From NCBI GenBank assembly GCA_964247055.1, contig OZ176057.1:3100001-3164000 (forward strand): a stretch of 64,000 nt of DNA, read 5' to 3'. The DNA is from Paragordius varius (Eukaryota > Animalia > Nematomorpha). Below, one piece after another: positions 9,900-54,296 of the stretch. The translations under genes were made by a program, and so were the position numbers. Every line of letters starts with the position of its first letter. The first letter of the stretch is position 1. A model generated the notes under the pieces. The model searched no databases, was not told the origin of the DNA, and saw only the letters and a program-made list of their open reading frames with translations.

Positions 9900-10060
9900 C
9901 TGGAAACTGGCTAATTTAACCACATTAAAACGTTTTCTAAACTACATACGCTTTTGTCACATCTTGTCTAAAACCAACAACACCTCTTTGTACACCCACA
10001 TCCCGTGCGTTTCAGCGCTTTCTCCATCACTCTCTAAAAGATTGGTTTTGACTACACTTC
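9900..10060 (-). pseudogene. Possible decayed Gypsy RT fragment
   Basis: The minus strand gives IF*RVMEKSAETHGMWVYKEVLLVLDK, loosely like IFQRVMEQVL...VYLDDVLV. Short and weak. Confidence 0.3.
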
Positions 10061-11101
10061 AAATGATGCATAAGTTTGCAAAAAAAACTTTTGTGTGATT
10101 GTAAAGCGTTGTGACTCTAAGTAGGCGTTTTTTAGACTTATATTGGTAAAAGTCCACTTTTCGATAGTTCATTTATTATTTTTAGAAGTTTACTCTATAT
10201 ACCATGGAACACGTATGCTAATTTTAAGGTCGATATAAAATCATATACTTTAAGGATAAGTTTGAAATTTAACGAAGTTATTCTCTTATTAATTTATAAC
10301 AGTTAATATTACACATATTGCATATGCACTTAAAGACCTTTAACATTTCAAGGTCTTCCGTGTAATTTCAATACTTCGAGTTGGTCCTTATTTCATTAAT
10401 TTTTATATCTATTTTTGCATATATTTATCTATTTTTTAATTTTTTAACCTAATATTTATATAATTTCCTTTTTTCAGTTAAAATTAATTTTAATAAAGCA
10501 AAATTTTTTGTTTCAAACTAATTTTTTTTCAATTTAACAATGTTTAAAATTATGTTTTTAACGTAAATATTAGCCCATAATCATATGTTTTTTTATTTAA
10601 AACCTTAATAATTAAATAGTTAAATTATTTTTCAGGAAATTAATAAAGATATACGGTTCTTGAATGAAAAAAACTGATATTGATTTAAAAGTTTGAATTA
10701 AATAAAGATATTAGGTTTAAAATGATATACATGGCTCGATTAATGAAAGTAAACAAAATACTGAAGGATATACAATTTAATTAAAAATATCAGGATAATT
10801 ATAGTGATTTTGATTATTGGCTTTGCGAGTCAATTAAAAAATTATATTTTGGTACAGATATTATTCTTAATTTTGGAAGCTAACTTTATGTTATCACAAT
10901 ATAATACACCATGTATAAAATTAATAATATCGAATAATACTCGTATATTGGCTGTGAAATTAAGTTTTTGGATTTAATTTTGAATTACAAATATATGTTC
11001 TATTATAATAATAAAATATATTATTTTAAAACATCACCATTAAATTTAATTAGAGAAATATGTCTTTAAAACCATGATAGAAACAAATACATTATATGAT
11101 A

Positions 11102-31700: not shown

Positions 31701-34700
31701 CATCTATTCCCTCAACAATGGCATTAACTACTTGAAATCTAGCACTCCATCGGGTTTCAGACTCACGTTTAGCAGTTTTTTTAATTTATATTTTAATAGG
31801 TCCCATCTAATAGTAAAACGTGTAAAAAAATTAATTTTAAACTATTCCGAAGCAGGTCATAACAATAACATCTTGTTTTGTTACCGTGACTCCTACTAAA
31901 TCATGGAATGATTGTCAGTGTTGACAAATATTGCTCTTTACTTTTTTCCAGAATTCTTTGTTAAACGCCTGAAATATGACCCGACATCGCAGCTGCATTC
32001 TCATAGCATTGAGAATTACAATTCGATAACTGAATATTATCCATAATTAGATTTTCTAAAATTACCTTTTCAGTTGATATGCATCTTGTTGAACAAACTG
32101 AAAAACCCAATAAGGATTCTTTTATGACAACTTTTTCTCATCCTACCTGACACTTTAGAAATTTGTTCTCGGCGGATAATATTTACTTTTTTATGTCATA
32201 GATTATTTTAGCTATAACTCTTGAAGTTTAAAGATGTATAAACTCGTTTTGGATTTCGGGTGAAATATAGAAGAAATTAGGAGATTCAATTTCTAATGTG
32301 TTTTCCCATTATTGGGTCAAACTGAGCTACAATTTTTTAGTGAAGATAAGAGGTTTCCAGGATTTGGTGCTGAGTCATCTAAATACATTAAACATTCAAC
32401 ATATTCTCGAAAAGATTAGAAATTTTATGCAGGCCAATCGATGTAAAATATTTCGTCATCGATCCTTTTCCGATCGTATGTGAGCTTCTAGAGCAATTAA
32501 TCTACTTTCTGCCTTTCCAAATAATAAATGCTTTCCGATGATTGAGGCTATTTTTATGATGGATTAATTTATCTTTTTTCCTTTATTTATTAAAATCATG
32601 CGTAGATGACGGTAAAGAATTAGATCGATCAAAAAGTAGGCAACAAAAACAATACGCAGATCTGTTCTTTGGTGATTACCCAAGACCTCTCAACTTCAAA
32701 TCCTTCTTTTTTATCGACACGTCGAAAAAACCAAGTTTGGGGCATTAAGCGATGAATTTTAGTTTCAAAGAGATTGCATTTAATTTTAAATCCTTGAGAT
32801 CCACGAATCATTTCTGTGAGGATTAAACAATACGGGAATAATTTTATTAGTAAATTTTAAAAAGGCGCATCATTAACCCTATAGGTATAGCGCTTGGAAT
32901 TACTGATGGTATATTGGTAGTTCTTTCATCTCTATTTATAGGATCAATAACTAGGGTTTCAGGTGTATTTAAGTTATTATTATTATTATTAAGGGGCACC
33001 GTTATGTTTGTGTCGCATACACTTTTTTCAATGTTATGGTCAGATATTTTCGTTAAATAAGATTTCATACTCATTCGCCTTTTGTTTGTCTTATTCTTCC
33101 TGGATTTCTCGTTTCATATTTGCGTAACCGTTGAGTTTAGGCATTAATATCTGGTTGATATGAAAGTAATTATAAAAAATACAAGGTTATATTAATAACA
33201 AAAACCTACCTTGTTAGAGATGGATTTAGGGATTTTAATAAATAAAATTGTGTTTTGAAATTATATGATTAAAATCAAAATGCAATTTTAAATAAGAATA
33301 AGAAATAAGGTTTTGAACAGAGAGAGAAGTTAAAATAATTTAATTAAAGGCAATAAAAGAGTTAACAATATGTGCGTGATAAAACGTTTTTTAAGCGAAA
33401 AAATAAGTTTGCACCTGTTGAAGGGAATACCTACATGAAAGTTGTCTTTTGCATAATGTTTGCTCTTGATATTATATTTTTTATATTAGGGATTATTACG
33501 TAAATTGCTAAAAAATCTTACTTGAAAGTTGTTATTATTTTTGCATAATTTAAATTTAATTTACAAAAATCATTTAGGCGCCCCTAAATAACGGCGCCCG
33601 GAACATGATGACCCCCTTGCCCCCCTCCCCCCTCGGTACGCCACTGGCCATGTAATCTTTGGAAAAGCTTATGCTTTTTTAATAAAACTTCTTATCAAAA
33701 TTTTACCTAGTGGATATTAAAATGCATAGTTATAACTCTGATATTACATATTCGTTAAAAAAATCAAAAATACCGAAAAATTTTTTTAGCCTTTGTAATT
33801 TTAAAATTATAAGCCTCCTAAAGAAAATAAATTAATATTGATGAGATGGTAATTTTTTAAAAATCGAAAACCTAAATATGGCTGTTTTGACTGACATTAA
33901 AATAATAAAAAAGTGTTTTAATCAAAAAAACTTTCTCGTTTTATTTTCTTTAGATATTCATTGCCATCTCGACAAAGTTTGGGCTAATTTCATCCATTAG
34001 TTTATATATTAATTAGAAAAACGATCTCGCTTAGTGCGTTTGTCGCTTCCTATGTCCAATATGAACTATCAATGTAAAACATATTAGTGTACATATTATA
34101 GAGTTTTTTTTGAATGATATATTACAAATGGGCATTTGTTGTATATTTTAAAGATAATTTCGTAAAATTTTAATAAAGAAGGCGCATAATCAAAAAAATA
34201 AAATTATATAAAATTCTTAGGTGAAATTATAGATTTACTGTTTAGATGATGATAATTATCAGAAAATGCAAAAATATTGAGTGGTGGAAAAATTTGCTGT
34301 CTAGTATGATGAATAATCTTTTCAATGGTAAATAATAAAAACCAAAATAATTAGAAGTATATTGATGGTGGTAGAACGTTTTTACCATCCCATGATTGAA
34401 ATATAAAAGTCTGTTAGTTTTATTTTTTCAACGTGGCCAGCCAAATTTTTTAGGCTATAAATAAGGCCCACAAGGCAATTCATTTGTACGCCCCTTGAAT
34501 ACGGTAAAACACTGAAATCCCTTTTTTTAAATTTAAATTAAATTTTTGAAGCATTAGGCGTTATTAAGCATTTACAACTAACATCATTATGAATGCAAAA
34601 TTAGATTTTTGAAAAGTTAACAACAAATATATAATTTTTTGGCATTCATTCTCTTGTATGTCTTCAAACTTTTTTAATTCTGAAAATTTATTATTTTTCT

Positions 34701-37700
34701 TTAAACTAAGAGGCCCCAAAAGGTATATAGCTTCGCCGGCCGCAATATATATTTTATAAGATTTAAAACAAAAGACTATAAAAACCACTGTTTATATTTA
34801 ACAATTTTCGCTAGTTGAATGACAAAATTGAGTAAGACTTATTCAGAAAATTGTTGAAATAACTCATTTTTAAAATTTAGTAAAATTTTGGTATTTGAAT
34901 TTACTGGCAGGCTGTAAAAATATTTCGGGTGCAGCCTGCGGGCTACGTGTTGGACACCCCTGGTGCAAACAAAAGCCAAAACACACAATATATATTCCTA
35001 ATAAATATTTCAAATTGTCTCTAAGTTAATTTTTAACTTCAATAAACTTTTGTTATATGCGAATTCTCATATTATACCTATTTTTTAATTAAAGCGTATC
35101 TTATCTTATAGTATTGCTCTACATTAGATGACTGATTCGCATTTATGTCATATAATTAATTATATTTAATTTTCATATTTGTTAGAATGGTCTTATCTTT
35201 GACATAACTAACAAAAAATACTTCCAAATCAACAATGACAATCTGGTATATCGTATAACAGATGCACAAACTAATATAGAATGGGCGTCACCATATACAA
35301 GTAAATGATCCTTTATTTTTGATTATATACTATTGTTATTTTTTTACGGTTTTGGACACAAAACATTTATATTATTTTGATATTTTTTAAATAATATAGT
35401 AACAAGGTGGAATACCGTTAGAAAGAACCGCCCTCCCAGGCGAGTTACTAGAAAGGAGAAATTATTCATAGAAACTGGCATTTTCTTTTCCAGCCAAGAT
35501 CTTAGTTTTCCAAAAGGATATTTAATTCTCATCATAGCACACGTAATAACTGACTTTTTATTATTTCCCAAATTATAAAATAATATTTTTAATTATATAA
35601 TGATTTTAATTATTTGCCCTATAAAGGCAAAGAATTTAACTCAAGGCTTTTTCCATGTAGGTCTATAGGTAGGGGTCTACCGGAAACTGAGACGCCATAC
35701 ACAAATGGCGTGGTTTCGGAGCTAATTTTCAAAAACTTAGAAAGCCATATGAGTCCAATAGAGGCTATAAATAATAGTAAAAGTTATAGTATAGCGTTTT
35801 TTCTTTAGCCGTCAATTTGGGGTCTTTCCACCAGATAATATATTATCATGTATGCAAAGTTTTTAAAATTCCATAAAGCACCGTTTTGAAAATCTATAAG
35901 ATCATAACTATTAAATAATGTTTCGAAATAATCCACATATATGGATCGCAATTTTTTGATATTTTACGCCCTCCTTTCCCCAAAGATAGAAGGACTTCCT
36001 CGGTCTGCACCCAGAGGCTGATACAAAAAAGGCGCTTAATTTAAATTTTTGCCTTTTACGGAGATTACCTGCAATCATGATTGCTTCCATATGCTTTCAT
36101 TAGTTTTTTGAAATTGCCTACACCAAAAAATCATTTTATGGTGGAGCATTTTTCAGGGCGTAGGGGCTAATTAACGGCTAATAAAATCGCATCACCTCAA
36201 TTTTTGCCTTGTTATGGGTAATATTTTAAGCAGCTATTGGACTCATATGGCATGATAGGTTTTCTGATATTTAACTCCAAAGGCATGCTCTTTCGATATG
36301 ACCTGACAGTTTTTAGTGGGTATCTCCTTATCCAGCAGCCATAAAAGAAACTCACGACTAAAATTTATGCCTTTAACAGGGAATAGCTAGAATCCTCATT
36401 GAATATCTACGGTTTGATACCTTGAGTGAAAAATAGATTCAAAAAATTATTTTTGTGAACTTAGTCTTTTTGAAAAAAATGGGCTTTTTCAGGGGACGGG
36501 TAAAAAGAGGGCCTAAATTGAAAAGGCTAGCCCACTATGTTCGGCGCAATCGAAAATAAGTATAAAACAATTATATCTGAAATCGAATGGTCCAGCATGT
36601 TTTCCTGAAAATTCTCTCAAAGACACGATTTTTGTGGACCTGTTTTAAAAAAACCGTTTTTTACAAGGGGTGGGCCCGAACTGGGGACCTAATTAAAAAA
36701 AAATGGCGAAGCTATAGGGGTATTAATTAGTGATTATATTTTTTTGACATTTTTGAATGGGTTTACCGGTTTTCCGGAAACGTATCACAAAGCCAGCATT
36801 TTCCATTTATGAATATATAGATTATTTTTGTATGACAGATTATTTTACATTACTTAGTCAATTGGCCTGATAAAAGCTATATATTATTTAAAAAATTACT
36901 TACCACCCTACGAGATTTAGCATTTTGCGTTTCTTTGAATTATAAATAATTTAAATTGGATATACCTTTTGTAAAATTATCTTAATTAACGTTAAAACCA
37001 AGATCAAAATTTTTGTTATAGCTTTCATAAATAACAGGCATTTAAACCAGTTTAGCACCCAAACAATTGAATCAATTATTATTTATCTATCTTAATAATG
37101 TTTATAGGAGGCTACACCAAATCAATTTTTTAGACATAACAAATATAAAATAAATAAAATATTTTATGTATAAAGGATCGAATTGAACTCAAGTACAATA
37201 AAATATACATGAATATTTATATAATAAAATCGTTTTCTCATTAAATTATCGGATCAAAATATTCGATAATTTTTAATATAGAAAATATTTATTATAGTTT
37301 ATAAAAAACTTTGATGTAAATTTTTGGAGTTTATTAATTTAAAACTATGCCCTAAATGGAATCAAAATGGTTATAAAGGGGCCAGGATTGTATTTTAAAA
37401 AGGGGGAAATATCACATATCTATGTGAAGATTCCTTATGTTCAATTTCGGCTTAAAACCTACAAAAATTTAAAAATTATTTCTTTACCGGTTTTCACAGG
37501 CAAAATTATTTTTACACGGCTTTCCTTGCTTTTTATAAAAGAATAAATTTATTTCGGTTAGGTTTACAACTAACTGAATAAAATTTGAATATATTTTTAA
37601 TAAGCATCTCAGTCATAATTTTGATATTTTATATCTTTAGGTGAATTTGATGCTGAAAAAGATACAGTACATAGATATTCAAATTGTGATTGATATGTTA

Positions 37701-40700
37701 TACGAAATGGAGGTTTATCGCAATATTTTTTATTAACAAACTTTTTTTTTATATACATTATCTGTTTAAAAGACAACTTGGTTAAGCGATGATGCATCTG
37801 TAGACCATGATAAATTCCAAGCCTGGGTCCGCCAAAATTTTGAAGATCATGATTTACATATCCTAATTAGCCAGTATGATATATTTTTACAAATAAAATA
37901 ATTTAAAAATGAGGCGAGTGTAATCTTCTAAATGAGTGTGTGTAAAAACAATATATTTTTTGTCGATTTTATACTTTCCCAATATTAACCATTCCTTCTA
38001 TGCACGATTTTTATTTACCCCATTCAAAATTATTTTAATTTGATACCATATATAAGAAGTGATTTATTGTTGATTTTTGGGAATCCTAAATCAATTGAAC
38101 ATCACAAAATGCTAATTTAAAAGAATAATGGTTATAATATATATATATCACTAGTCGACAAATTTGGACATTTTTAAGCACCACCACTCAAACTATTTAA
38201 ATTATGACTAATTTCAGTGTTTTAAAACCGAATTTGAAAAAAAATTGATCCCGCCAATCAGAATTTTGAAATTTTATAGGTTTTTCAATTTTTCAAAAAC
38301 AAGAGAAAATCGAGAGAAAATTAAATATAACTTTATAATAAAATGTTATTATATTATAAACTTAATATCATTTAATAAAGCGTTTTAAACTCTATCTTTT
38401 GAATATAAATATGTCATTTAAATATCAGAGAGAAAAAAATAGTACGGACTCAAACGTCAAAATTTAGTCTTTTTTTTCAAGTAAATTTTTAACACATGTA
38501 AAAAATTTTTAAAAAAATACTAAAAAAGGCATTCTATGGTTTAAACCTTCGGCTTTCAGATAGGCAATATTTTTTTTTGTTAGATTTCGTTCTTTCGAGT
38601 ACTTATTAGACTTTTTCTCTTGAGTTTATAAAAAATCCTTTATTTATACCTAGTGGTACCTTATTTTTTTAAAATTATTGGTTGTTTTGTATTTTGAATT
38701 TCAGATGGATGTTGTGTAGCCACTTTTAGTAGAATTTACTGTTATGGGGTTGGACCATTTGTATTTACCTAATTTATATTCAATTTAATTGTAGAATTTA
38801 TCTAACTTTATTCTGTAAATTGGTTAATTTGACATGTCAATTTGCCACGATTTTGCTTGCAAGTCTCTCTTATCGGACTTTACGATTACTTATTGTTATC
38901 TTTGCCATATCTGGCATAATTATAGGATCGCTTGGGGGATATGCAGAGCTTGTGCAGCCGCCGATATCTATAACACTATACATAAGCCCCTTTTAGATTT
39001 TTAATACTTTGGCTCTTAGCTTGTTTAGTATCTTATTTAATGCCTAGAATTTGTTATCCATGCATGGAATATTACTTGTATCGACTTAATTGTTTGAATA
39101 TTTAAACATATGTACACCAGGAATGATTGTTATTTTTGAATTACATACAAATTTAAAAATTAAATTTTGGAAAAATCCTATTGGTTGCCTCAATTTTCTT
39201 TTTTGTTTTGGCCTTTCCATGCCATTAGGTATCAGAAAATGCAAAAATATTGGGGTGGTGCAAAACCTTGTTGAGCAGTGTATATATATATATATATATA
39301 TATATATTGATCAATACAAGTGATACTTTGCAAACTAAATTTGCGTGTGAGAATCAATTTTTTCAGATGTAGGCTGATTCAATTTCTATTATATTATATG
39401 ATCAATTATTAAGGTGTCGATCGTTGAGCCTATTTGAATTTATTATCTGATAATATGTCTGAGCTATTTGTTTGAATGCAATTGAAAATTCAATAATAGT
39501 CATAAGTTAGCCTCTGGTATAGCCCTATCACATGCAACATAACCCATCATAACAAAATACATCATAAGTGAGAAACGTACATTTTCTGAATTATTAAAAT
39601 CTTTTATCGAATAATCACTTTTGAAATGTTTCGATCAACATCAGATGTGTAAAAATTGGCTTTTTAAAAACAATATCAGAAAATCGCTTTTTAAGCATTT
39701 TTGAAAAGTGCATTTTATATTTAACATTTCGCTTCGGCACAAATCATTTTTTGATTATATATCCAAAACGTATACTGTAAAGATTTACCCAGAAAGAATA
39801 TTCACCTATGGTTAATACCCTAATTTTTTTAAATAATTTTAAACAACTTGATTAGCAACATCATTGACCAACCACACTCCCAGGACCACATTGAGGTTAA
39901 GAAATTTTGTCGCAAAATATTATTTAGTTTTATAATTCATACCATTTATTTCTGTGAAGTTTTTTTCAATAAAATGTATGTTTTTGCACAAACTGTAGAC
40001 GATTAACGGGCGCTGTAACATTGGATGGATATTTTTGTATATTCTATTTTTTCTTAATTTTGATTTTGATTATATCCGATATTTATACATTTGTCCGATA
40101 ATATTTTTAAAGTTGGAGGTATTACAGTTGAAAACGATTTATGTCAACCCGGGAGTGTCATGTTAATTAAAGATTATGGATTCATAGATGCATATTCCAT
40201 TGCCCATGAAATTGGACACAAGTATCATTTTAAGCGGGCTTTTTAATTTTAACAAATAATTTAATTATTAATTCTATATTTATTTTTTTTATTTTGGTCA
40301 ATGACAATTTGTTAAAACGTTGGCTTTTTATTATTATAATCGCCATGATCGAAATTAATGGGTATCAGATAAGTTGAAATATTATTCATTAACTACTCAT
40401 ATAATTTTCTCAATATATTTATAAAAATGGAAAATCCTGGCTTTGTGATCTGATTCCAGAAAACCGGAAGACTTATTCATATCCAAATATTGTAAAAATA
40501 TAATCATCAATGAATGGCCCGACAATAGCTTCTTTTTTGAATTAGGTCCCCAGTTCGGGCCCAACCCGTGTAAAAAACGGGTTTTAAACAGTCCACAAAA
40601 ATCGTGTCTTTGAGAAAATTTTCCGGAAAAAATGTTGGACCATTCGTTTCATATATGATTTTTTTCACTTATTTTTGATTGCGCCGAACATAGTCGGCTT

Positions 40701-43700
40701 GCTTTTTTAATTTAGGCCCTCTTTTTACCCACTCCTCCCGTAAAATGCCATTTTTTCAATGGAATTAATTCCACAAAAATAATTTTTTGAATCTATTTTT
40801 CGGATATAAGACCAAAAAATTCAATGATGATATCAGGTATTCCCTGTTAAAAGGCAAAATTTTTAGTCAAGCGTTTCTTTGATGATAGCTGCTGGGTAAG
40901 GAGATACTCGCTAAATGCGCCATCCTATCGAATTAGCGTGCCTTTGGGGATAAATTTCAGAAAACCTATCAGGCCATATGAGTTCAATAAGTGCTTAAAA
41001 TATTACCCCTAACAAGGCAAAAATTTAGGTGGTGTGGTTAAATATTAGCCTTTAACTAGGCCCTTCACTCCCTGAAAAATGCGCCACCATAGAATTTTTT
41101 AGTTTTGAGGCAATTTTTCCAAAAACTAATGAGAGCATATGGAATCCTCATGATTCCGGTCCGTAAAAAGGCAAAAATTTTAATCTAGCGCTTTTTTTGT
41201 ATCAGCCTCTGGGTGGAGAGCTACCCGGCCAAAACTGCGCCACCATATCGAAATTGCGTTGTTTAGGAGTTTTTCCGAAAACTTATCAGGCCAAATAAGT
41301 TTTAAAATGGCCTGAAATATTACCCGTAGAAAAAATTTAAGACGAGCAGTTTTAAAATAGCCCTTATTAGGTTCTTTACGCCCTAAAGCGCTAATAGAAC
41401 TATTATTTAGTTTTGAAGCCATTGTTCCAACTATTAAGAACAAATATGAAATAAATGATGATTCCAGGTTTTCTGTTATAAAGGCAAAAACTTTTCTCGA
41501 ACCTCTTTTTATATTGGCTTCTGGGTAGGGGGTTACCAGGGTAAAATTGCGTCACCACATCGACACAGCATGCCTTCAGAAATTTTATCAGGTCATAAAA
41601 GTTCAATAAGGGCTTGAAATATTACCCGTGAAAAAGGCAAAAATTAAGTAGAGCGTTATTAATTACCCCTTAATTTGTCCCTTGCCCTAAAAAATGCGCC
41701 ACCATAGAATGAATTTTTGGTTTGAGGCAATTTTTCGAAAAGCCAGATCATATGAAATTAAATATGATTCCAGGCATTCCCCGAATTAAGGCAAAAATTT
41801 AATCGAACGTTTTATTGTTTCGCCCCTGGTTAGGGGACTACCCGCGTAAAACCACATCACCATATCGATACAGCATGCTTTTGGAGCCATTCAGAAGCAA
41901 ATATTTTGCCCAACGCTTTTTTTATACCTGGCCCAGAAATTGCGTTGTTTTGCGTACCGAAAACTTATAAAGCCATTAAGCTCATTAAAACCCTGAAATA
42001 TTACCCGCAACTAGGTAAAAAAAGTCAGGCGTTTTTTATTAGCCGTTATTTGCCTTTATGCACTAAGAATACGCCATCATATAACGATTTAGTGTTGAGG
42101 TGTTTTTTTGAAAAACCCATAAGACGATGGCATCAAAGATGATTCCAAATATTTGCCTTATAAACACAAATTAAACTTAGCGCTTTTTCCATATAGGTCT
42201 ATGGGTAGGGCTCTACCCGTTACTGAGACGCCATAGAAAAATAGCGTGGTTTTGGAGACATTCATAAAAACTTTAGAAGCCCTATGAGTTGACTTAAACA
42301 CATTTCTTGTTAATTTGTATAATATCATTCTTACCTTCAAAAAGAAACCACAAATAATTTATTTTTTATATTCCTTGTTCCCAGTAGTGTGAACATTATA
42401 AAATAAAACTTTTAACCATGATTTCGTAAAACGAAAATCTTAAAATAATTCCAATGATAGTTAAATATAAACTGTAATAAGGGACAGTTTAAATATGGTT
42501 TCGAGTGAGCCTATACAAAAACCTATAAAAGAATAATAAAAAACATTTTTTTATTGAATATATTTTTTACTTTTATCTCCATTACCTCTATTTATTGCAA
42601 ATTATTAAAAATAATTATCGGTGAAACTACGTCACAGCGAAGCGTGACAGGGCCAGCTAGTAATAAATATAAAACTACAATAACTTACAAACAAAGGGCA
42701 AAAAATAATTTAATGGATCAAAACAACAGGACTAATTAAATATTATTCATATTCAAATAACAAAATATTAAAACATAAAATCATTTTTTTCAAACGAGAG
42801 CCATACTTTTTTAACGAATTTTTACTCCATAAACTATTTATGAAATATATACATTAGGCACAATTATACTTGCTTATTAACATTATTATTGATTTGATTT
42901 ACAATAGCGTATATTATAGTTTTTGTCCCTTATCAAATAAACAAAGTAAAGTAAAATGGGAAAGATTCTTTTTTTAACATTTCGTTGTTTTTTTAATCAC
43001 TACTGTGTAGCCATTTAAGCAAATATAATTTAAATGGCATAAATACTGTATTGAATATGTTAATTACAAATTCCTTCTGCAATCCAAAAGGATAAATTGG
43101 ATTTATAAATAATCAAGATTTGAAAATATATGGTGTTTGTTGTTATATTTTTACATTGGTCAGTATAATTTAAATTTTTACTATTTTCCCGTTGTCGGCT
43201 TAATGAGTGCGCCTGGAATAATTCCAATTGCATATAACCGTTTGATAAACGACAATACCATGCAGGTCATACTATTTGAATCACATTTAAAAGCTTCATT
43301 TATCTTAAATGTTAAATTTATTCAATTTATATATATGTTAGATTTGGATGCCCTCATGATCAAAGTGTTGAAGAGTGCAATGGCACAGAAACAAGAGGGA
43401 TTATGCATTACGATTCAGTGGGTCATCAATTAAAGCGTTGGTCTTCGTGTTCAGAACAAGCAATTAGACAATTTGTTGAGTATATAATTTTATGTAAATG
43501 AGATTTTCCAGACTTAAATAATATCCCCATCCCCGTCGATAAGTGATAAAAAAATAAATCAAACAAACATAAAATAAGTTTTATCTTCATTGTCCGTAAT
43601 CTTTTTACTAAAATTTACTAAGATGTTTGATCTTTGTATAAAAAAATATTTTGTTTAACAATAACAAACCGAAAAAATCGAACCGTATTTTAACAATTAT

Positions 43701-44776
43701 CAGATTTTATATATTATATGTAATTTTTGTTACGGGTCAGCTCAAGTGCAAGTAATTGTGTTCGAAACGAACCAATAATCGATCTCTATTCATCAACACA
43801 ACTTCCTGGTTACGCCCTTGAACATGGCCTATGTCAAACGCCAGGCTATAATCCTGACGGGAAAATTGTCCATACGGTTGGTTTTATACTTAAATATTTA
43901 TAATATTTGTAAATAAATTAAAAATTATGTTACCAATATTATACAGGAATCCAATTGTACCTACCTTATGTGCCAATACAATGAAACGTCAAATTACATT
44001 GCCAATTTCCATCCATGGAATGGAACGCCTTGCATTCGGAGAGGACAAAATCATACTCTTAGTGAGCCCGAAAGAAAAACTCAGGTTACACAGTATTTCA
44101 TGCCATATTTACATAGCATATGTCGGATCCATGGTTATTCAAATAGCCCTTTTATTAAATATATCTCTTTTTTTGTTTGATCTAGGTCTGTCATAATGGG
44201 AGATGTCGTTATCTATCTAACCTTGTTCGCGAACTCAATATGGGATGGACACCGTGGTCGGGCTGGAGTGAATGTAGAAATGGAAAAAAGTTTAGAGAAC
44301 GTCGGTGTGGAAGCATAGAGTATAAACCATTGTTTTGCATAATTTTTTTAATTCTAGAAGAGTACTGGAAATATTGAACTGATAAAAAGTAGTGCCTACT
44401 TTTTAAATCACTCTTCTTAACATTGTTTGTTAAATATTTAAAAAAATATTTTTGACGGCTTAACCGACATATACAGTCGTGTAGGATACTAATGTAATTC
44501 TAGAAGGGATTTGGAAGATTTCGTTAATTTACCTAAAATTTAAGTAAGCGTCTGGAACAGTTAAACCATAAATTATTTGATTTCCCTTATTCTTATGTGA
44601 ATGCATAATATACATACATGAACAGTACTGGGCGCTAAATTCAAAAATGGGTTTATATTGAATTATTCATCTCACATTATTAATATATTCTGACAGTATA
44701 TAAAAAATATAATGTTAATTATTTTTTCAGATTCGATTTTTGCACGGGAGATTTCGTAACTACAGTATCGTGTTAA
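28766..44776 (+). CDS. ADAMTS-like M12B (reprolysin) zinc metalloprotease, truncated after one TSP1 repeat; ~551 aa in ~13 exons
   Basis: Manual model: 28766-29245 (signal peptide + prodomain), 35186-35300 (NGLIFD..KYFQI), 35400-35542 (RKNRPPRRVTRK furin-like site, LFIETG, YLILII), 37108-37167 (tentative), 37773-37873 (KFQAWV..DHDLHILIS), 39856-39895 and 39999-40014 (tentative), 40113-40221 (DLCQPGS..DYG..AHEIGH), 43342-43479 (KFGCPHD..GIM..WSSCS), 43741-43876 (CVRNEP..LPG..LC), 43947-44084 (CTYLMC..NGTPC), 44186-44319 (VCHNGRC..GWTPWSGWSEC..RERRC), 44731-44776 (FCTGDFVTTVSC-stop). All introns are GT-AG with consistent phases, and the total of 1656 nt is divisible by 3. Confidence 0.88.
29929..31021. 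mobile_element. Non-autonomous Tc1/mariner-like element, family D, copy 1 (intron 1 of the protease gene)
   Basis: TIRs CACTAGACAACAAATTT ... AAATTTGTTGTCCAGTG|TA; colinear with the copy at 31226-34296. Confidence 0.75.
31226..34296. mobile_element. Non-autonomous Tc1/mariner-like element, family D, copy 2, interrupted by a hAT insertion
   Basis: TA|CACTAGACAACAAATTT left end and AAATTTGCTGTCTAGT right end; homology to copy 1 breaks at 31418 and resumes at 33647. Confidence 0.75.
31419..33646 (-). mobile_element. hAT transposon (Tip100/ZMYM1-like), internally deleted, decayed
   Basis: Perfect 15-bp TIR CAGTGGCGTACCGAG and perfect 8-bp TSD GCCATGTA (31411-31418 / 33647-33654). Minus-strand remnants include WFFRRVDKKEGFEVERSW (TTF-type Zn finger region), QCYENAAAMSGHISGV and KRESETRWSARFQVVNA. 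Confidence 0.92.
34900..34962. mobile_element. Isolated hAT (Charlie-type) right end
   Basis: gcagcctgcgggctacgtgttggacacccctg, whose reverse complement is CAGGGGTGTCCAACAC. No partner end was found. Similar orphan ends occur at ~29811, ~27268 and ~18395. Confidence 0.5.
35610..35830 (+). mobile_element. Helitron internal fragment (sense orientation)
   Basis: Reverse complement of copy B 23920-24050 (ggtaggggtctaccgg...gagacgccatac..aaatggcgtgg). Confidence 0.7.
36000..36821 (-). mobile_element. Helitron copy C, 5' part only
   Basis: The minus strand begins A|TCTATATATTCATAAATGGAAAATGCTGG at 36821; colinear with copies A and B for ~820 bp. Confidence 0.8.
38149..39280. mobile_element. Non-autonomous Tc1/mariner-like element related to family D
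   Basis: Left end CACTAGTCGACAAATTTGG; right end atcagaaaatgcaaaaatattggggtggtgcaaaaccttgttgagcagtg|TA. The subterminal atcagaaaatgcaaaaa is shared with the family D copies. Confidence 0.6.
40113..40221 (+). CDS. Catalytic exon of the ADAMTS-like gene (HEIGH)
   Basis: GGITVENDLCQPGSVMLIKDYGFIDAYSIAHEIGH; CAT GAA ATT GGA CAC at 40205-40219; flanked by taaag| and |gtatca. Confidence 0.92.
40410..42660 (+). mobile_element. Non-autonomous Helitron copy D (best preserved ends), inside the intron splitting the zinc-binding motif
   Basis: 5' end TCAATATATTTATAAAAATGGAAAAT; 3' hairpin GTCACAGCGAAGCGTGAC (42631-42648), 8 nt, then CTAG|T at 42657-42661. Confidence 0.88.
43342..43479 (+). CDS. Exon of the ADAMTS-like gene with the third zinc ligand and Met-turn
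   Basis: (K)FGCPHDQSVEECNGTETRGIMHYDSVGHQLKRWSSCSEQAIRQFV; phase 2 at both ends, matching its neighbours. Confidence 0.92.
44186..44319 (+). CDS. Exon of the ADAMTS-like gene: end of the disintegrin-like domain and start of TSP1
   Basis: VCHNGRCRYLSNLVRELNMGWTPWSGWSECRNGKKFRERRCGSI, between tctag| and |gtataa. Confidence 0.9.
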
Positions 44777-44898
44777 AGGATGTAACAATATACCAATATA
44801 TTCTCCATATGTACCAATCAAAATCCATATGATTTTAGATTATTAATTGCCTATTATATGTGTTTTTCATTTCTGATTTATTTCAGTTATTTACCAAT

Positions 44899-44904
44899 AA
44901 TAAA
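44899..44904 (+). promoter_or_regulatory. Candidate polyadenylation signal of the ADAMTS-like gene
   Basis: AATAAA ~120 nt after TAA 44776 (weak evidence in AT-rich DNA). Confidence 0.4.
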
Positions 44905-45462
44905 GTTTTAATGAAAATTGTTATTTAGCATATCTGATAAATTGAATTTGGGAGGCGCTGACCTTTTGGGGTGTTAAAAATTTAAGCCAGTCTATGAAAG
45001 CTTATAATATTTACCAAATAAACATTATGTAATTTTTTTACTATGCCAAACGACTTTTAAAAGTTGGTTGAAGCAGGGATTAAATACGGAATCATTTAAA
45101 GATTAGATTTGGCCTAGAGTCTTTGATCACATTTATGGTTTAACAATAACCATAATTTTAGGTAAAATATATATGGCAAAGGAATGATTCTTAAAAAATA
45201 TAAAATATAAAGTTTTTTCTACTGTTAATTTAATAAAGTGATATCGATTAATTATTTTGTGGAAAAAGAGGTGCGAAGCTATTTAATTTACAAGATATTG
45301 TTAAACATTTTTTTGGTATTATAAAAAGGATTATTATTTTTCTAAGCGTTAAATTATTTTTATATTTTGAAGTTTTATGAATATTTACCATCAAATTATG
45401 TCAAATAATGTTTAATTTTATCTTATTTTTTACCTCTACCATCATGCTTCAAAAAACATATA

Positions 45463-47134
45463 CCATCGCACTTCAAGATTGTCCTTGAAAACTTCAAGTT
45501 AATCCTTGAACATTTCAAGTTGGTTCTTGGTCCTTTAATTTTTTGTTTTTTTATTAATCATATCCTTTATATTCAGCTATTATCAATTTTAATTTATTTG
45601 CTTTATTTAACATAAAATTCACTACAAAATTAAAATGTAATAGATTTTGACGCGCCATTAAAAAATAGATATTTTTCTGGGTTATAAAATTTTTTTATTA
45701 AAATCCTTCCTCTATATATTTATAAAAATGGAAAATGCTGGCTTTGTGATCAGTTTACGAAAAACCGATAGACCCATTCAAATCCAAACATCGAAAAAAT
45801 ATAATCATTAATGAATGCCCCAACAATAGCTTCGCCCTTTTTTGAAATAGACCCCCGGTTCGCCCCCCCCCCCCCCCCCCGTGTGATAAACGGGTTTTAT
45901 TGATAACACAAGTCCACAAAAATCGTGTCTTTGAGACAATTTTCCGGAGAACGTGTTAAACCATTCAATTTCAAATATGATTTTCGTTTACTTATTTTCG
46001 ATTGCGCCGAACATAGTAGGCTAGCTTTTTTGATTCAAGCCCTCTTATTACCCGCTCTCCCCGTAAAATGTCACCTATTTTTCGATTTTTCGCCTTAGGT
46101 ATGAGACCGTAAAAATTCAATAAAGATTCCACGTATTCCCTGTTAAAAGGCAAAAATTTTAGTCAAGCGTTTCTTGGATGATAGCTGTTGGGTAAGGAGC
46201 TACCCGCTAAAAACTGATTTCTCATGTAACTTTGTGATCTGTTTCCGGAAAACCGGTGAACGCAATCAAATCCAAATATCGAAAAAATATAATCATAAAT
46301 AAATGCCCCGACAATAGCTTCGCCCGTTTTTGGAATTAGGTCCCCAGTTCGGGCCCACCCCGTGTGAAAAATGGGTTAAGTCAATTTTTCGGAGAACGTG
46401 TTGGACCATTCAATTTCAAACATGATTTTGGTTTACTTATTTTCGATTGCGCCAAACTTAGTCGTTCACTTTTTTGATTTGGGCCCTCTTTTTACCCGCT
46501 ACCCCCGTAAAATGCCATTTTTTTAAAAAAAAAAGTCCACAAAAATAATTTTTTAAATCTATTTTTCGCCCAAGGTATGAGCCGTACAAACCTAATGAGC
46601 GTCCACGTATATCTGTTAAAAGGCAAAAATTTTAGTTAGGCTTTTCTTTGATGATAGCTGCTGGGTAAGGAGCTACCCGCTAAGAACTGATCCGATTTGT
46701 GATCTGTTTCCGGAAAACCGGTAGACCCATTCAAATCCAAATATCGAAAAAATATAATCAATAATGAATGCCCCCCCCAACAATAGCTTCGCCCTTTTTT
46801 TAAATTAGGCCGCCAGTTCGGGTTGAGACAATTTCCCGGAAAACGTGATGGACTTCAATTTCAAATAATAACAAATAACTCCAAAACAATAAAGTGGTTT
46901 TGAAAAAAATATCTTTCAAATGAATATATTATAAATAAGAAAATTAGGTTAAAAAATAATAAAAAAATAAATACATGCAAAATTATGGTTAAATTACTTA
47001 AATATTTTATGGACCAACTTGAAATGTCTAAAGACCGATTTGACGTGTTCAAGGAATAACTTAAGAGGTCAAGGATCAAGAAGTTTTCAAGGATTAACTA
47101 GAAGTGTTCAACGACACTCTTAGTGAGCAAATGG
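45463..47134. mobile_element. MITE, family B, interrupted by Helitron fragments
   Basis: TATA|CCATCGCACTTCAAG left end and GAGCAAATGG|TATATA right end, with 21-bp arrays at both ends. Confidence 0.7.
45711..46860 (+). mobile_element. Tandem array of three Helitron 5' fragments (copy E)
   Basis: TCTATATATTTATAAAAATGG at 45711. The sequence restarts at tttgtgatctgtttccggaaaaccgg near 46231 and 46698, each time after gggtaaggagctacccgctaa.aactgat. Confidence 0.8.
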
Positions 47135-49769
47135 TATATATTGTTAAGTAAAGAATAAATATGGAAGTATTAATATAAAAAATATTTTAATGTCAATTTC
47201 GACCATTCAATTTAAAAGTTACCAGTATTATTTTACTCTAGATTTACCCTGTATTGAAAATCGAATGAATCTTATAAAAAATGTATATTCTAATAGGAAA
47301 ATGTATCAGGATTATAATAGTGCTTTTGTGTTTATTAAACTAACAATTTTTTATCATAAATTTATGGAATGAATATTTTAATCAATAATCTGAAGTGATG
47401 AAATGTTTAGCATTATCAAATAATATATAAAAAGTTTTTTTATTATGTGTAATAGCGTTTTTATACCGTTTCCACCATGCCTTAAAAAAGAATAAAAAGT
47501 ATGCATTCATTAAAAAATATTTTTTTATGTCAAAATTTAGCATATATTTATAAATTTTAACGCGCATCCCGGAATTATTACGTTTATTGGAAAAAACTCC
47601 ATTTTAGAGCGAAACAATTTAGGACTTTCGGAGCCTAAATCAAAAATTAAAATATTTTAAAAATATAGTTTTTCTTTTTATAGGTTTTATGATTAATTTT
47701 AGTGATATTTTTGGAATAATGCATTTTCATCATAAATTTTCCATTATTAATACGTAGCATCCAAAATTTAAAGAACTTTCTTATATCACTCGTAACGGCC
47801 AAAACCAAAAGCAGCATAATAATCCTGATACATTTCCCTAGAATATATATATTTCAACAACTTATTTTTTTGTCGAGACAGTGTTTATAATATAAACTTT
47901 TTGAAATGTAAGTTTGTAATATTTGGTGTATAATTATTATTATTATCATAATATACTATATTAAAACTTCGGTTCAAATTTCTAAAAATCCCAGACTTAT
48001 GTGGATATTTATAAAAAAATTACTGAAAAAACGGTTCCGATTCGAATTTGCTATCCTAACATAAATTATATAAATAAGTCGAAATATCTAAATAAAGTTT
48101 GGTTTAATTCCATATTATATTATTTCAACGCCATTATTATACTACAACATTTTTGCAAAATATGTTTATTAAATTTAAAAATAATTAATAATATTTAAAT
48201 CTCATCTAACATTAACACTTAGATACAACGCATTCATTTCGTTCCTTCGATTCATTGGGGTAGTTGGATACCCCGGTCCTTTTTAAAAAAAATAATTTAA
48301 AAAATATGGAAGGAATTAAACCATAACAAAAATTTGCACATATATAACATTAATTAACCAAAATATATAAAAAAGTTGCATCAAAAATCTTTGATATTAC
48401 TTATTTTAAGGTAAAAAGGTAATTTAGTCAACCTGACATGTGTGCATTAGCTAATTTGTAAAATAATATAAAATAAACCACTTTTTATGTTTCTATCAAT
48501 GTAAGATGTGATTTAAATGAAACATTAACTTGGCTTTAAAATAATGTGACCAGATAGTCTGTTTTTCGCAGTACAGTACTGGGTTTTCAGAAAAAAACTG
48601 CGCCTGTACTGCGTCCACTTTGTATTGCTTTTTGAAATTAAAAAAAATTAATTTTTTACATTTATATAAAAATTACCTTTTATTTATTCAAAAAATTATT
48701 TTAGAATTTAATAAAGTATCCTCTGTAAAAATAACTCCATAATTTATAAAGAAATGGTTTATTTTGCTGTAAAAAACTAAGATTGGCCTATTTTTAATTG
48801 GTTAATATTATTTTTTGCTTGAAATATACATAAAACTTAGGATTGCAGCCTTTCGATCAGTGGCGAAACTATAAATCTCGGACTCCACATCGTAAGATTC
48901 AGGCTAATTGCTTCCGCAAAAAAGGTGCCACAAAATTTAAAATTAACAATTAATTTATGATATTTTAATAAATGTTTGATCAAGTTTAGAAAGTTCATTT
49001 TTTGTTATAATTATCAAACGAATTATATAGAAAATTGTTATTCCCGTATCATATTATATAAAATTTATTATATATGGATGATTTCGAAACCTTTTTTCCG
49101 TATTAAAAAATTAAGAGTTTTTTTACACTTTTAACACTCATTAGGTGGGAGGTAGGATATTTCTTAATTTTTTTTCTTTAATTTAATGGTTGGTTTGCTT
49201 GCAAAAATTGGTTAATTTTTATAAAAAAACAATTTAGTTTGAAAACGAACGAACATTTTAACCAAAATTCTGAGTCAAAAATGTATAGCCTTATCGAATT
49301 ATATATATAAAGTGTTGTAACACCTTTATGAAGTACGCTTCAACAAAATTGTGCTAAAAATTAAATTTTTGAAAGTATGCATTTTTTAAAAAATATATAT
49401 TGATATCAAAATTTAGCATATATTTAAAATAATTGGACAATGTCGGAATTTTTGCGTTTTCTTTAACAGAACAGTCCATTTTAAAGAGCCAAAAAATTTG
49501 AGACTTTCAGCCCACATCTAATAATTTTAAATTTTCAAAAATATCGTTTTGCTTTTTTGTAGTGTTATATTATAGTGATATTTTTTAAAATAAAGCATTT
49601 GGCTTTCACTATTCGCAAAAATTGCGCACCTTTTGCAATTTTATACGGAGCACGTACTAAAGTTTATATATCTTTCTTTAATAACTCGTAAAGGTTAAAA
49701 CCAAAAGCAGAATGATAATCTTGATATTACCTATCAGAATATATATATTTCATCACTGTGTAATATACC

Positions 49770-50132: not shown

Positions 50133-53100
50133 AACGAAAGCGGGCGGGTTTCTGACGACTTCTTGTCGGGTACCGTGGTTCTTGTGTTTTAGCGGGGGAG
50201 TAGATTGTCGCAGATTTCTGGGTATTATCATTATTTAGACTTTCGGCTGTCGGGGTAATTGGTTCGATTTCGTCCTTTGAATTGATCGTGTTTGGTTGCG
50301 TTTCAGCGATTGCTCCATCATCCGTGGCAGTGGTTATCTCCTCCTCATTTGTGTTGCTGGCAGTGGTCGGCTGTGGTTATGGCTGTTGGTTGCTATTAGG
50401 TCAGCGTGTCACAACTTTGTCTCGGTCCTTGTCCCATACCTTGTATGAAAATAACCCTGTACGGTCCGTAATCTCTCCGGGGCGCCACTCTGGACTTAAC
50501 TCATTTTTAATAATTACCTGGTCATTAATGGCAAACTGCCGTCGGGGGTCCGGTGTAGCAATCTCGCCCTACTATTTAACCAGGTTAAGGGGGTATGGGT
50601 GAACATTAACTGGGCCGGGGTTTCTTTCGTTGTTGAGTGTATAGAATTTCTATACGCCCACAGGCAAGTGTTAAACGCTTCGTGGGTGAATATCACATTA
50701 TTTTTTATTCTTTTTTTATTTTTTATTGTACTTACTAACCTTTCTACCATCCCATTATTCTTAAGATGGTAGGGGGTAACCCTAATATGTTTCACCCCTA
50801 ACGTACTTAAGGTTGACGTAAAGTACTCATTACTGAAATACGAAGCGTTATCGCTAACATCTCTCTTGCAAAGTCAAACCTTGCAAACGTTTCTTCTACT
50901 TTGTGGATTATATTCGCTGCGGTTACCTTTTTCAAAATAAATCCTTCTCCCCATTTCGAGGCACTATCAATTATCAACAACCAATAAAAACCGTCTACCG
51001 GTCCGGCTATATCAATATGCAAGCGCTCCCACACAGCAACATTATGATCCCACTGATACGTGGAATTCTGAGTAACATTCGGCCCACTACGTTGGCACGA
51101 TTCGCATTGACTACTGGCTTTTACCAGGTCATTTTCTAATTCTGGCCAATAACACGTAAATCTGGCCATTGCTTTCATGGTCTCTACGTTGTTATGACCG
51201 TTGTGCAGGCATCTCACCACCTCTTTTTGGAGGGGCTTCGGAATTACAATCCGATCATTTAAACTTAATAAGCCATTTGATATGCCAACTCGTCTTTACG
51301 GTTTACAAACTTTTTTAATTCTGGAGAACTTTAGTCATGGTTGTTTAACGCTTTAATTACTTTTTGTAATACTGGCTAATGCGGTTTTCGAATTTCATCT
51401 CTGCTCCGCACGTTATGACAATTCAAAAATCTCAGATATCTGCTAACCGCATACTCTTCATCATAGGCAACGATCTCGTCCATCGGTCATCTCGATAAAT
51501 AATCAGCTCTATTTTGAGCCCCTTTTTGATGACTTATTTCAAAGTCGTATTCAAATATCATATTAATCCACCTTAGTACTTTAGCATTATGTATATCTTT
51601 TAAATTTCGATCTATTTATTAACTTTACTAAAGTTAAATAGTCAGTTAATATTATAAATTTTCTACCGTATACGAAACTATGAAACTTTCGTAACGCAAG
51701 CAATATTACTTTTAATTCCAGTGGAATAATTCCTTTCAGCGTTGCTACACTTTTGTGAGGCATACGCTATCAGTATCCTTTCACTATTAACTTCATGACT
51801 CAAAATACACCCGAATCCCAAATCTGACGCATCAGTTTCTATTATCAATTTCCTATTCGGATTATATGGTGTTAAAAACACTTTTTCGCTTAACAAATTC
51901 TTAGCTGCTAACCAGCTTTTCTCATTTTTCTCGGTCCAAAACCATCTCGTATTTTTACTAATTAATTCATGTAAGAGACCGACTATCATTTGTAATTTTG
52001 GTATAAAGCGTTCATGAAATGTCAAAAAACCTAAAAAACTACGTGATGACTTTTTATCTACCGGCCTTTTTAGTTCCTTAATAGATTTGATTTTGCTTTC
52101 ACATGGGCTTATACCCTTTTTCGATATGCACCTATCATTATTTTATCTTTTCTTAATTTAAATCCGGCCTCGTTAATACGTTATTTAAATTGTTAATGTG
52201 CTCCTTTTCCTTCCTACCAGTCACTAAAACGTCATCTAAATATACGCATGTTCCCGGACTTTCAGCCAGCACTTGTTCCATCACTCGTTGGAAGATGATG
52301 GATGCCGTAACCAGTCCAAACGGCATGCGTTTGTATCTAAAAAAACCTTTATGTGTTGATATTGTTAACAATTCTTGACACTCCTCTGCTACTGGCATTT
52401 GGAGGTAAGCAACTTTTAAATCAATTTTTGTGAGTGTGATACCTTCGCCTATTTTCGACACCAACTCATCAAACGTGATTATATGAGAGCCTTCTTGCAA
52501 CCACTTATGAATCGTTACCCGAAAATCACTACATTCTTAATTCGCCATTCGGTTTAAGTACATTAACCGTAGGCGTGGCCCATGTCACAGGTGTGGTGTT
52601 AGGATCAACTGGTTCTAAAATGCCTAACTTTTCTAGCCTTGTCAGATTCTCAACCTTTTCTTTTAAAGGAAAAGGCACCCTGCGACATGGCCATACTTTC
52701 GGGATCGCATTCGCTGCAATGCGAATTTTTACAGGGTCTTTATAACACCCTAACTTATTTTCAAAAAGTTTTTAAATTAACTTTAACCTGTGGCATCGCA
52801 ATCTGGAATTTCGCCATCCAGTCCAGTCCACAGATCAGCGGAGCCATCCCCATCGTTTTGCTTAGGACACTTATGTCCCCGACCATTTGTTTACCATTTA
52901 CCTGGACCTTGACACTTGCTGTCCCCATCATTAGCACTGTGGTATTGTTGTACGATTTTACTGGGGGTGTGGGACGCAGCTTGGGTTTACCGATTTGCTC
53001 CCATGTGGCAAAGTTTATTACACTAATGTCCGAACCAATATCATATATAAAAACTTTTTTTAACCCGTTTATTACTAGTGTTATCAGTAAGGAAGTTAGC

Positions 53101-53948
53101 GCCTTATGACCCACGTTAACTTCCTTCAACAATTGCTTATTGAAGTTTTTTGTCTCTTGGCCACACACATTCTCGCAAAATGGCTCTGCTTTCCGCATTT
53201 GTTGCAAGATCGTCTCCAGGCTGGACACTTGTTAGGTGGGTGTGTGGTGCCGCAATATTTACATGTAGTAGAAGATTTTACTACTGTGTGTCGATTGGAT
53301 TTATAATGTTGTAACCGATTGATATTATTATTGCTGTTACTATATCGATGCTATTGTTATTACTATTATTGTTATTCTGTAATCCAGCCCTAGCAGCCTC
53401 ATGTGCTAGTGCGAGATCTACGATTGTTTCTAATGGGACAGGAATAGCGTTTATCAAATCTGGATACCTAGAATGGATATCCATATCTAGTTGAGGTTGT
53501 CGCAGTCCTATCACGAATGCATCACGAATACGCTGCTCTATGGCTTCAGTGAATTGAGCTTCTTTTGCTCCTATCTTGACACGTTCGAGGAATTGGGTAA
53601 AAATTTCACCCTCGTTGCGTACCAGTTTATAAAATTTAAAACGGCTTTGGAATTTTGATTTGGTCGGATTGAATATTTTTTTGCCTGTTTCCGTGATCTC
53701 CACCCATGTGGCGTCTTTTATTTACTTGGGGTATAAACGTTGGTTAATCTTTTTTATTTATCATGAATCCGCCATATGCTAGTATAGTTGATTTAAGCGT
53801 TTTTTCGGTTACCAGAATATCCTTTGCCTCAAGTACGTTGCTAATATACTCGAGGTACTCTTCGAATTTATTATTATCATTGTATTTTTCTATGGCTAAA
53901 TTCGCAATACTAGCGTGAAGGCTGTGATAATCATTGGTTCGTCTGCCA

Positions 53949-53966
53949 TACTCGTCTTGGTCACCA
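53949..53966 (-). promoter_or_regulatory. Primer-binding site, tRNA-Trp-like
   Basis: TGGTGACCAAGACGAGTA, one nt inside the 5' LTR, compared with the tRNA-Trp complement TGGTGACCCCGACGTGAT (recalled, not computed). Confidence 0.6.
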
Positions 53967-53967
53967 C

Positions 53968-54296
53968 TGATAACTGGAGACGACGTAAAGTCAATGGCAA
54001 ATTTATTGTATATCGTATTGTATAATGATCTATATATATATATATATAATATATATATATATCTAAGATAAATAGGTCTAATGTATTCACATATTTCAAG
54101 GTGATGTTTGCTTTTATACAATTAACTCAAGGTATAATAATAATAGTCACACGTGGTGGTGAGGTTATAATAATATAATAATAGTACACAGATAAGTTAA
54201 TAGGTTAATATAATAATATATAACCAATGTTGTTTGTGCGGTTAATCTAATCGTGTATTAAAAGATTCATTCAAATTAGCCTGTCACACTCTAACA
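53968..54296 (-). repeat. 5' LTR of the Gypsy element
   Basis: Direct repeat of 49770-50117, followed on the minus strand by the PBS. Confidence 0.9.

Follow-up and report, generated by a model that had tools for sequence, protein, structure and literature searches.

The gene that ends at position 44776 of this stretch of the Paragordius varius genome raises the question of how short an ADAMTS protease can become, and of whether this one stops where it does through selection or through decay. The window, by which we mean the whole stretch of DNA analyzed (64,000 nucleotides, G000:C8:3100001-3164000), consists of eukaryotic DNA that is very rich in A and T and whose exons are short. The part shown probably holds the 3' end of a gene that is intact and has at least 11 exons (28766-44776, plus strand), and its product is likely, as predicted from the translated exons, a secreted M12B zinc protease of ADAMTS descent that ends after a simplified thrombospondin type 1 repeat (TSR). 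Translation appears to stop genuinely at 44776, and the short design is apparently old and under selection rather than a result of decay. As judged from the exons recovered, the gene belongs to a subfamily that numbers at least five or six putative short genes in this genome.

The gene model was read from genomic DNA, all searches were run exon by exon, and local motif scans were made with positions 47601-47700 masked. From 35400 to the stop, the introns are of the GT-AG type with matching phases, as read from the boundary DNA. The exons from 35400 on total 1055 nucleotides and, together with one base of the preceding exon, give an open reading of 351 codons; the last four are 43741-43876, 43947-44084, 44186-44319, and 44731-44776, with phases 2/1, 0/0, 0/0, and 2/1, respectively. 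If a phase-1 donor at 29175 is used, the protein would be about 487 amino acids long. The predicted exons, with the basis of each call in brackets, are as follows (paralogs B and D are introduced below).

28766-29174, plus strand: exon 1, with the start codon, the signal peptide, and most of the prodomain (open frame 28688-29296, which begins MNKVFYAYSWSFLWLILLLCSLRG; donor scan).
35400-35542, plus strand: furin-like site RPPRRVTR, then the beginning of the catalytic domain, KEKLFIETGIFF (in the alignment, paralogs B and D have RRQ and KKRIKR at this site).
37641-37712, plus strand: catalytic-domain exon, VNLMLKKIQYIDIQIVIDMLYEME (AG/GT boundaries in phase 0; frame, splice phase, and by-eye comparison with canonical ADAMTS).
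37773-37873, plus strand: catalytic-domain exon, with KFQAW replacing F-C-x-W (alignment, splice sites).
39999-40036, plus strand: small exon, RLTGAVTLDGYF, occupying the position of the calcium-binding loop, with no cysteine (frame and splice sites).
40113-40221, plus strand: catalytic exon GGITVENDLCQPGSVMLIKD...NDLCQPGSVMLIKD...AHEIGH(K), with the first half of the zinc motif and the S-C cysteine changed to valine (alignment).
43342-43479, plus strand: catalytic exon with FGCPHD (third zinc histidine and an extra cysteine), EEC, the Met-turn IMHYD, and WSSC (Reprolysin match).
43741-43876, plus strand: last catalytic cysteine (SNCVRNEP) and Cys1 of the disintegrin-like (Dis) domain (GLCQ), with no Dis Cys2; ends GLCQTPGYNPDGKIVHT (alignment).
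43947-44084, plus strand: Dis Cys3, Cys4, and Cys6 (ESNC, LMC, TPC), with Cys5 replaced; ESNCTYLMCQYNETSNYIANFHPWNGTPC...KTQ (ADAMTS_CR_2, E = 0.021).
44186-44319, plus strand: Dis Cys7 and Cys8 (VCHNGRC), then TSR strands A and B with WTPWSGWSEC (Cys1), RNG, and FRERRC (Cys3); WTPWSGWSECRNGKKFRERRCGSI (alignment, Pfam and PDB matches).
44731-44776, plus strand: last exon, (E)FDFCTGDFVTTVSC, with TSR Cys4 and Cys5 (FCTGDFVTTVSC) and a TAA stop at 44774-44776 (translation, paralog comparison).

The N-terminus is hydrophobic (MNKVFYAYSWSFLWLILLLCSL), the signal peptide being called by reading the sequence, and RPPRRVTR directly precedes the catalytic start, such that a signal peptide, a prodomain, and a furin-type site can all be read. 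The zinc motif HEIGHKFGCPHD is intact and divided by a 3.1-kb intron, HEIGH(K)FGCPHD spanning the 40221/43342 splice; the consensus HExxHxxGxxHD and the Met-turn IMHYD together mark a Reprolysin (M12B) catalytic domain. The Pfam matches of individual exons are weak because single exons are only 37-47 amino acids long: Reprolysin (E = 0.0096) and Reprolysin_3 (E = 0.13) both fall below the curated cut-off, ADAMTS_CR_2 scores 15.7 bits in one exon against a cut-off of 27.3, and TSP_1 has E = 0.12. The Reprolysin, ADAMTS_CR_2, and TSP_1 matches nevertheless agree among themselves. The 37641-37712 exon has no significant tblastn match in the paralog loci (best E = 0.26), low-stringency tblastn for upstream exons returned mostly noise, and PDB searches with the single Dis exon and with the second catalytic exon gave no match. 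Most of the 3.1-kb intron is taken up by a dispersed repeat (window 40400-42400), which recurs at 45400-46000, as well as near paralog loci A (about 10980-11750) and E (9300-10000).

The cysteines of the predicted protein can be compared with those of L019, a canonical ADAMTS elsewhere in this genome (C4:8.036-8.046 Mb), which contains Reprolysin, CR_2, TSP1, CR_3, and spacer domains and several C-terminal TSRs, with every canonical cysteine in long open frames. Local pairwise alignment of the exons gives the following correspondences.

Catalytic domain: canonical FCDW, FQAW in the window gene; cysteine lost.
Catalytic domain: canonical SCSIAED, SVMLIKD in the window gene; cysteine lost.
Catalytic domain, last cysteine: canonical YCLLNRP, NCVRNEP in the window gene; cysteine kept.
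Dis Cys1: canonical HQQCQ, HGLCQ in the window gene; kept.
Dis Cys2: canonical SSFC, absent from the window gene; lost.
Dis Cys3 and Cys4: canonical QPCKYLYC, SNCTYLMC in the window gene; both kept.
Dis Cys5: canonical GQCIYAFAPW, SNYIANFHPW in the window gene; lost (Tyr/Ile).
Dis Cys6: canonical GSAC, GTPC in the window gene; kept.
Dis Cys7 and Cys8: canonical TCFNGEC, VCHNGRC in the window gene; both kept.
TSR Cys2: canonical WSEWSEYSPCSRTCGGG...RHC, WTPWSGWSEC-RNG...RRC in the window gene; lost (CSRTCGGG versus C-RNG).

The Dis domain thus retains six of the eight canonical cysteines, lacking the second and fifth, and the TSR four of six, lacking the second and the sixth, the protein stopping after Cys5. 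This is the pattern described in the initial annotation, and translation, splice sites, and the L019 alignment all bear it out, as they do the absence of the F-C-x-W and S-C cysteines from the catalytic domain. The calcium-loop pair (DxCxxxxC) of ADAMTS1, 4, and 5 is also missing as a pair. The TSR still has the W-x-x-W-x-x-W and R-x-R motifs along with its four cysteines, as in the variant without the third disulfide. An additional, non-canonical cysteine lies within the zinc motif (FGCPHD), which brings the count after the furin-like site to 15, with one orphan.

The cysteines lost from the Dis domain and the TSR are disulfide partners. The crystal structure of ADAMTS13 pairs the Dis cysteines 311-337, 322-347, 332-366, and 360-371, that is, 1-4, 2-5, 3-7, and 6-8 (PMC6706451), and the second TSR of TSP-1 has bonds 429-466, 433-471, and 444-456, that is, 1-5, 2-6, and 3-4 (PMC2173040); since these structures pair 2 with 5 and 2 with 6, the missing residues belong together, and the pairing scheme that had been put forward for both domains agrees with the published structures. 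By our calculation, random loss of as many cysteines would strike partners only with a chance of roughly 1/7 × 1/5 × 6/70, or about 0.002. The F-C and S-C cysteines of the catalytic domain are presumably partners too, as in the annotation of ADAMTS1/4.

A TSR with four cysteines also has a structural precedent. Among solved structures, the TSR exon matches best with the C-terminal TSRs of complement C7, C8, and C6, all gapless, with E = 2.5e-5 for C7 when the single exon is used and 3.8e-7 with a profile of six paralogs. This family profile aligns without gaps to C7 residues 501-525, whereas TSP-1 repeats need a four-residue insertion that holds Cys2. The C-terminal TSRs of complement C6-C9 lack the third disulfide and have a short AB loop (Tan et al. 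2002, PMC2173040). Because the complement repeats matched here lack that bond, the four-cysteine TSR is a known folded natural form. In TSP-1 the Cys429-466 and Cys444-456 bonds cap the layered core, while Cys433-471 ties the AB loop to the C-terminus (PMC2173040). Read from its sequence, the window repeat is a Group 1 TSR without the third disulfide: the cysteines of the Cys1-Cys5 and Cys3-Cys4 bonds are present and Cys2 and Cys6 are absent. It shares the short AB loop and the missing Cys2-Cys6 bond with the C-terminal repeats of complement C6, C7, C8 alpha/beta, and C9; unlike it, these belong to pore-forming MACPF proteins, do not form the very end of the polypeptide, and carry an extra unpaired cysteine between the first two tryptophans.

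Whether the protein really ends at Cys5 can be judged from its paralogs, found by a genome search with two exons. These lie on C7 (A and B, 30 kb apart), C5 (C), C3 (D and E), C4, and C6. Paralogs A and B have the same exon structure as the window gene, and their last exons, ELCTGDFVTSVDC-TAA and EYCTGEFVTSIGC-TAA, stop right after Cys5 in the pattern ...CTG[DE]FVTS[VI]xC-TAA. Paralog D ends in FCPGNSYERERC followed by 10 residues and paralog E in FCIGASVQRRRC followed by 16, both tails being free of cysteine. The stops of the window gene and of A, B, D, and E are all TAA, and the flanks beyond them are unrelated. The remaining paralog, C (C5:10731968-10736640, minus strand; L012, L017), reads RMGVKYD at the place of the third zinc histidine, and a search for its last exon found none within 6 kb.

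Among the paralog exons recovered, every retained cysteine, the three TSR tryptophans, and the R-x-R motif are conserved, even though pairwise amino-acid identity within the family is 35-54%. The proportion of synonymous differences (pS) is about 0.7-0.8, with a full range of 0.61-0.86, at or near saturation, compared to 0.29-0.48 for nonsynonymous differences (pN); dN/dS, where computable, is 0.19-0.57, and about 0.19 between A and B. The cysteines kept in the paralogs and the low pN against a saturated pS support the initial proposal that the pattern reflects selection on a folded protein and not pseudogene decay.

Several observations weigh against an intact and selected short gene. The 3' end of exon 1 is uncertain, the donor at 29175 fitting the next exon found and extra prodomain exons being possible. 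No relatives were recovered in other species by a profile search with the Dis and TSR exons (1.84 billion representatives, 546 matches): the best 150 of the 546 matches are multi-TSR proteins, only one with an M12B zinc motif (1652 amino acids), and the search, swamped by such proteins, is silent on the short build elsewhere. GT dinucleotides at 44765, 44770, and 44772 are conceivable donors before the stop. Lastly, the orphan cysteine of FGCPHD sets a limit on the paired pattern. Paralogs A, B, and L022 (L010, L011, L022) have both the zinc-motif cysteine (HExxHxFGCxHD) and a second cysteine after W-S-x-C (WSDCC, WSNCC, WSECC), and paralogs without the former also lack the latter, such that the two look like a family-specific extra disulfide beside the active site. 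The window gene instead has WSSCS, the likely partner having changed to serine, and half of the extra pair is lost; this could reflect relaxed constraint on the window copy. Because of this orphan, and because paralog D retains its F-C cysteine (DVFCEY) without the S-C partner, the initial statement that cysteines are lost strictly in pairs is too strong. It holds for Dis 2/5 and TSR 2/6, according to the structures, and breaks down at these two residues.

The orphan cysteine leads to the rival explanation that best survives, although we consider it unlikely, namely that the short family is real and the window copy itself is silent or becoming a pseudogene. The partner of the orphan is kept in A, B, and L022, the sequencing runs found to share words with the stretch (X1-X4 from one organism, X5 and X6 labelled as two others) all look like DNA and none is recorded as RNA, the long introns of the window gene are filled with repeats, and the sister copy C has already lost zinc ligands. 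Nonetheless, the exons from 35400 on are all open, the splice sites, zinc motif, Met-turn, and furin-like site are intact, and every retained structural cysteine and tryptophan is kept despite saturated synonymous divergence from the nearest paralogs. A decaying copy of such age would not be expected to keep ten open exons along with their splice sites.

It is quite unlikely that the stop at 44776 is instead bypassed, with one of the GT dinucleotides before it joining downstream exons that escaped our searches to give a longer, ordinary ADAMTS. The related C4-array and C6 paralogs do run on from the same exon into Cys-rich exons, which lends this explanation some weight. Yet the searches detected no sequence coding for Cys-rich, spacer, or TSR domains within 19 kb downstream or on the part of the contig scanned. 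The ADAMTS_spacer1, ADAMTS_CR_3, and TSP1_ADAMTS profiles, which give clear scores at other loci of the genome, have no match at C8:3.10-3.164 Mb, and ADAMTS_spacer1 matches 16 places in the genome, none of them on C8. With the Cys-rich, spacer, and TSR frames of L019 and of a member of the C2 array (L002), tblastn recovered only the catalytic exon in the window, and neither the Cys-rich exons of the C4 array nor a scan for the CGxCGG motif (CGVCGG block) found anything in the window or in loci A-E. The gene is followed by about 5 kb of AT-rich DNA with the intron repeat, and the next recognizable feature is a broken Ty3/gypsy-like element on the opposite strand. Moreover, the stops of A and B fall at exactly the codon position seen in the window gene, and the GT that overlaps the stop of the window gene is missing from A, which reads TGC-TAA. 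A micro-intron of 22-27 nucleotides that would remove the stop was rejected, as there is no AG at the required distance. Poly(A) signals after the stops occur at the background rate only and are uninformative. The comparisons and searches make splicing past 44776 unlikely. The initial claim that the stop is genuine and that the Cys-rich, spacer, and further TSR domains were discarded thus gains support both from the alike endings of A, B, D, and E and from profile, tblastn, and motif searches that found none of these exons downstream in the window.

An assembly or frame error at the stop is very improbable: the +1 frame after 44773 does read ...KGCNNIP, with a cysteine near the Cys6 position, and stays open for about 20 codons, but the stops of A and B lie at this very place and their frames, when shifted, give no cysteine and end within 2-3 codons, which shows that this KGC is due to chance; four DNA runs contain 0.64-0.74 of the words sampled from the stretch, and Cys2, the partner of Cys6, is missing anyway.

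A genuine stop after a four-cysteine TSR has consequences for classification. According to reviews, all ADAMTS share the metalloprotease, Dis, central TSR, Cys-rich, and spacer domains, and ADAMTS4, the minimal human member, consists of this bare core (PMC4885070, PMC4448532). The window gene resembles them in its signal peptide, prodomain, furin-type site, Reprolysin domain, and central TSR, and its Dis domain has the ADAMTS_CR_2 fold signature with six of the eight cysteines. It differs in that the Cys-rich domain and the spacer are absent, in missing two of four catalytic, one of four Dis, and one of three TSR disulfides, and in the extra cysteine of the zinc motif. Because two defining features, the Cys-rich domain and the spacer, are lacking, we file the gene as ADAMTS-derived rather than as a full member of the family.

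Among known members, ADAMTS13 lacks the calcium-binding-loop disulfide found in ADAMTS1, 4, and 5 (PMC6706451), the same pair that is absent from the catalytic domain of the window gene. Unlike the window gene, ADAMTS13 keeps a full Dis domain, a six-cysteine TSR1, and the Cys-rich and spacer domains, along with a further seven TSRs and two CUB domains. The snake-venom metalloproteinases offer the closest parallel of this kind, being duplicated M12B genes in which, from P-III to P-II/P-I, the domains after the Dis domain were lost along with two to four cysteines, that is, one or two whole disulfides (PMC4885070). These, however, derive from the ADAM lineage, have no TSR, and are vertebrate venom-gland toxins. 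Another reduced protein is Caenorhabditis elegans MIG-17, a protease of the ADAMTS family whose ancillary region is drastically cut down, which is not known to have a TSR and has a PLAC domain at its end; the window gene differs from MIG-17 in keeping one TSR and nothing else. A narrow literature search found no paper describing an ADAMTS that consists of metalloprotease, Dis, and TSR domains only.

The same genome suggests how the short build may have arisen. A series would begin with canonical ADAMTS (step 1) and lead to the C6 paralogs, in which the TSR would still have Cys2 and a Cys-rich-like exon would be kept (step 2), then to the C4-array paralogs, with TSR Cys2 and Cys6 lost and the Cys-rich exons kept (step 3), and finally to the short type in the window as its end point (step 4). 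The C6 paralogs (C6:3297000-3395000, L021, L022) have a TSR with Cys2 (WSSCKGFCPLGY...C; KGFC) followed by a Cys-rich-like exon, and the C4-array paralogs (C4:885000-975000, L020) have a TSR without Cys2 and Cys6 (WSEWTPCKGDTQYG...C; HPCIGNGIQTKLCKNPK) followed by the Cys-rich CA and CB exons. No spacer signal was shown in the ADAMTS-like loci of the C4 array and C6. Because the C4-array paralogs lack both cysteines and still continue into Cys-rich exons, truncation alone does not account for the missing Cys2-Cys6 bond. In the order proposed, the third TSR disulfide was lost first, then the spacer, and then the Cys-rich domain; this order can be studied directly because apparent intermediates are present in one genome. 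The initial annotation had described the gene as deliberately minimized; this does not hold as a trait of this gene alone, and a stepwise history at the level of the family fits instead.

If the gene model is correct, the product would be a secreted zymogen, cleaved at RRVTR to yield an active enzyme that would work with its intact HExxHxxGxxHD zinc site. The catalytic domain would keep two of the four ADAMTS disulfides, and the Dis domain, with three of four, would pack against the protease the way it does in ADAMTS. As the only ancillary module, the single TSR would be stabilized by its two capping disulfides and a Trp/Arg ladder, and the protein would end on TSR Cys5, with neither a Cys-rich nor a spacer domain. 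We infer that the product is made and folded and that it acts as a soluble protease. This short protease would be devoid of the exosites for matrix anchoring and substrate selection that in known ADAMTS come from the Cys-rich and spacer domains. Truncation studies of ADAMTS4 and ADAMTS5 suggest that such a build would have little proteoglycan-type specificity or matrix retention. The TSR cannot take the usual O-fucose (POFUT2), which many ADAMTS need for secretion, because the C-x-x-S/T-C-G site is absent.

We tentatively suggest that the horsehair-worm lineage evolved and multiplied ADAMTS-derived proteases without Cys-rich and spacer domains, with intermediates still living in the genome. 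Such proteases might diffuse freely, their TSR escaping O-fucosylation quality control, and possibly take part in the remodeling of host tissue or cuticle. Each single element has a precedent, whether TSRs without the third disulfide, paired cysteine loss, or domain loss in M12B proteases. Reviews assign substrate recognition and matrix binding of ADAMTS to the central TSR, the Cys-rich domain, and the spacer. A conserved and multiplied subfamily in which just the first TSR is left would reveal to what extent the ADAMTS core is dispensable in vivo, and would be a natural counterpart of the truncation constructs of human ADAMTS4, 5, and 13.

We also noted features beyond the short genes themselves. 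The element downstream of the gene (window 50282-54121, minus strand) is a broken long terminal repeat (LTR) retrotransposon pol with the reverse-transcriptase motif VYLDD, an integrase-like part, and gag-like open reading frames; the G+C content of this remnant is 0.39, compared to about 0.29 around it. The DNA-like runs X5 and X6, labelled as two other organisms, contain 0.43 and 0.29, respectively, of the sampled 31-letter words of window 43300-44900, and these close relatives probably carry this locus. The C2 array mentioned above (C2:1302000-1420500, L002-L009) comprises about 12 tandem copies on the minus strand at a spacing of ~10 kb, in which signals of ADAMTS_CR_2, CR_3, spacer, and TSP1_ADAMTS were seen and the open frames span 340-370 amino acids; some copies contain stops. 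Having only a faint Reprolysin signal, these genes may be ADAMTS-like rather than proteases.

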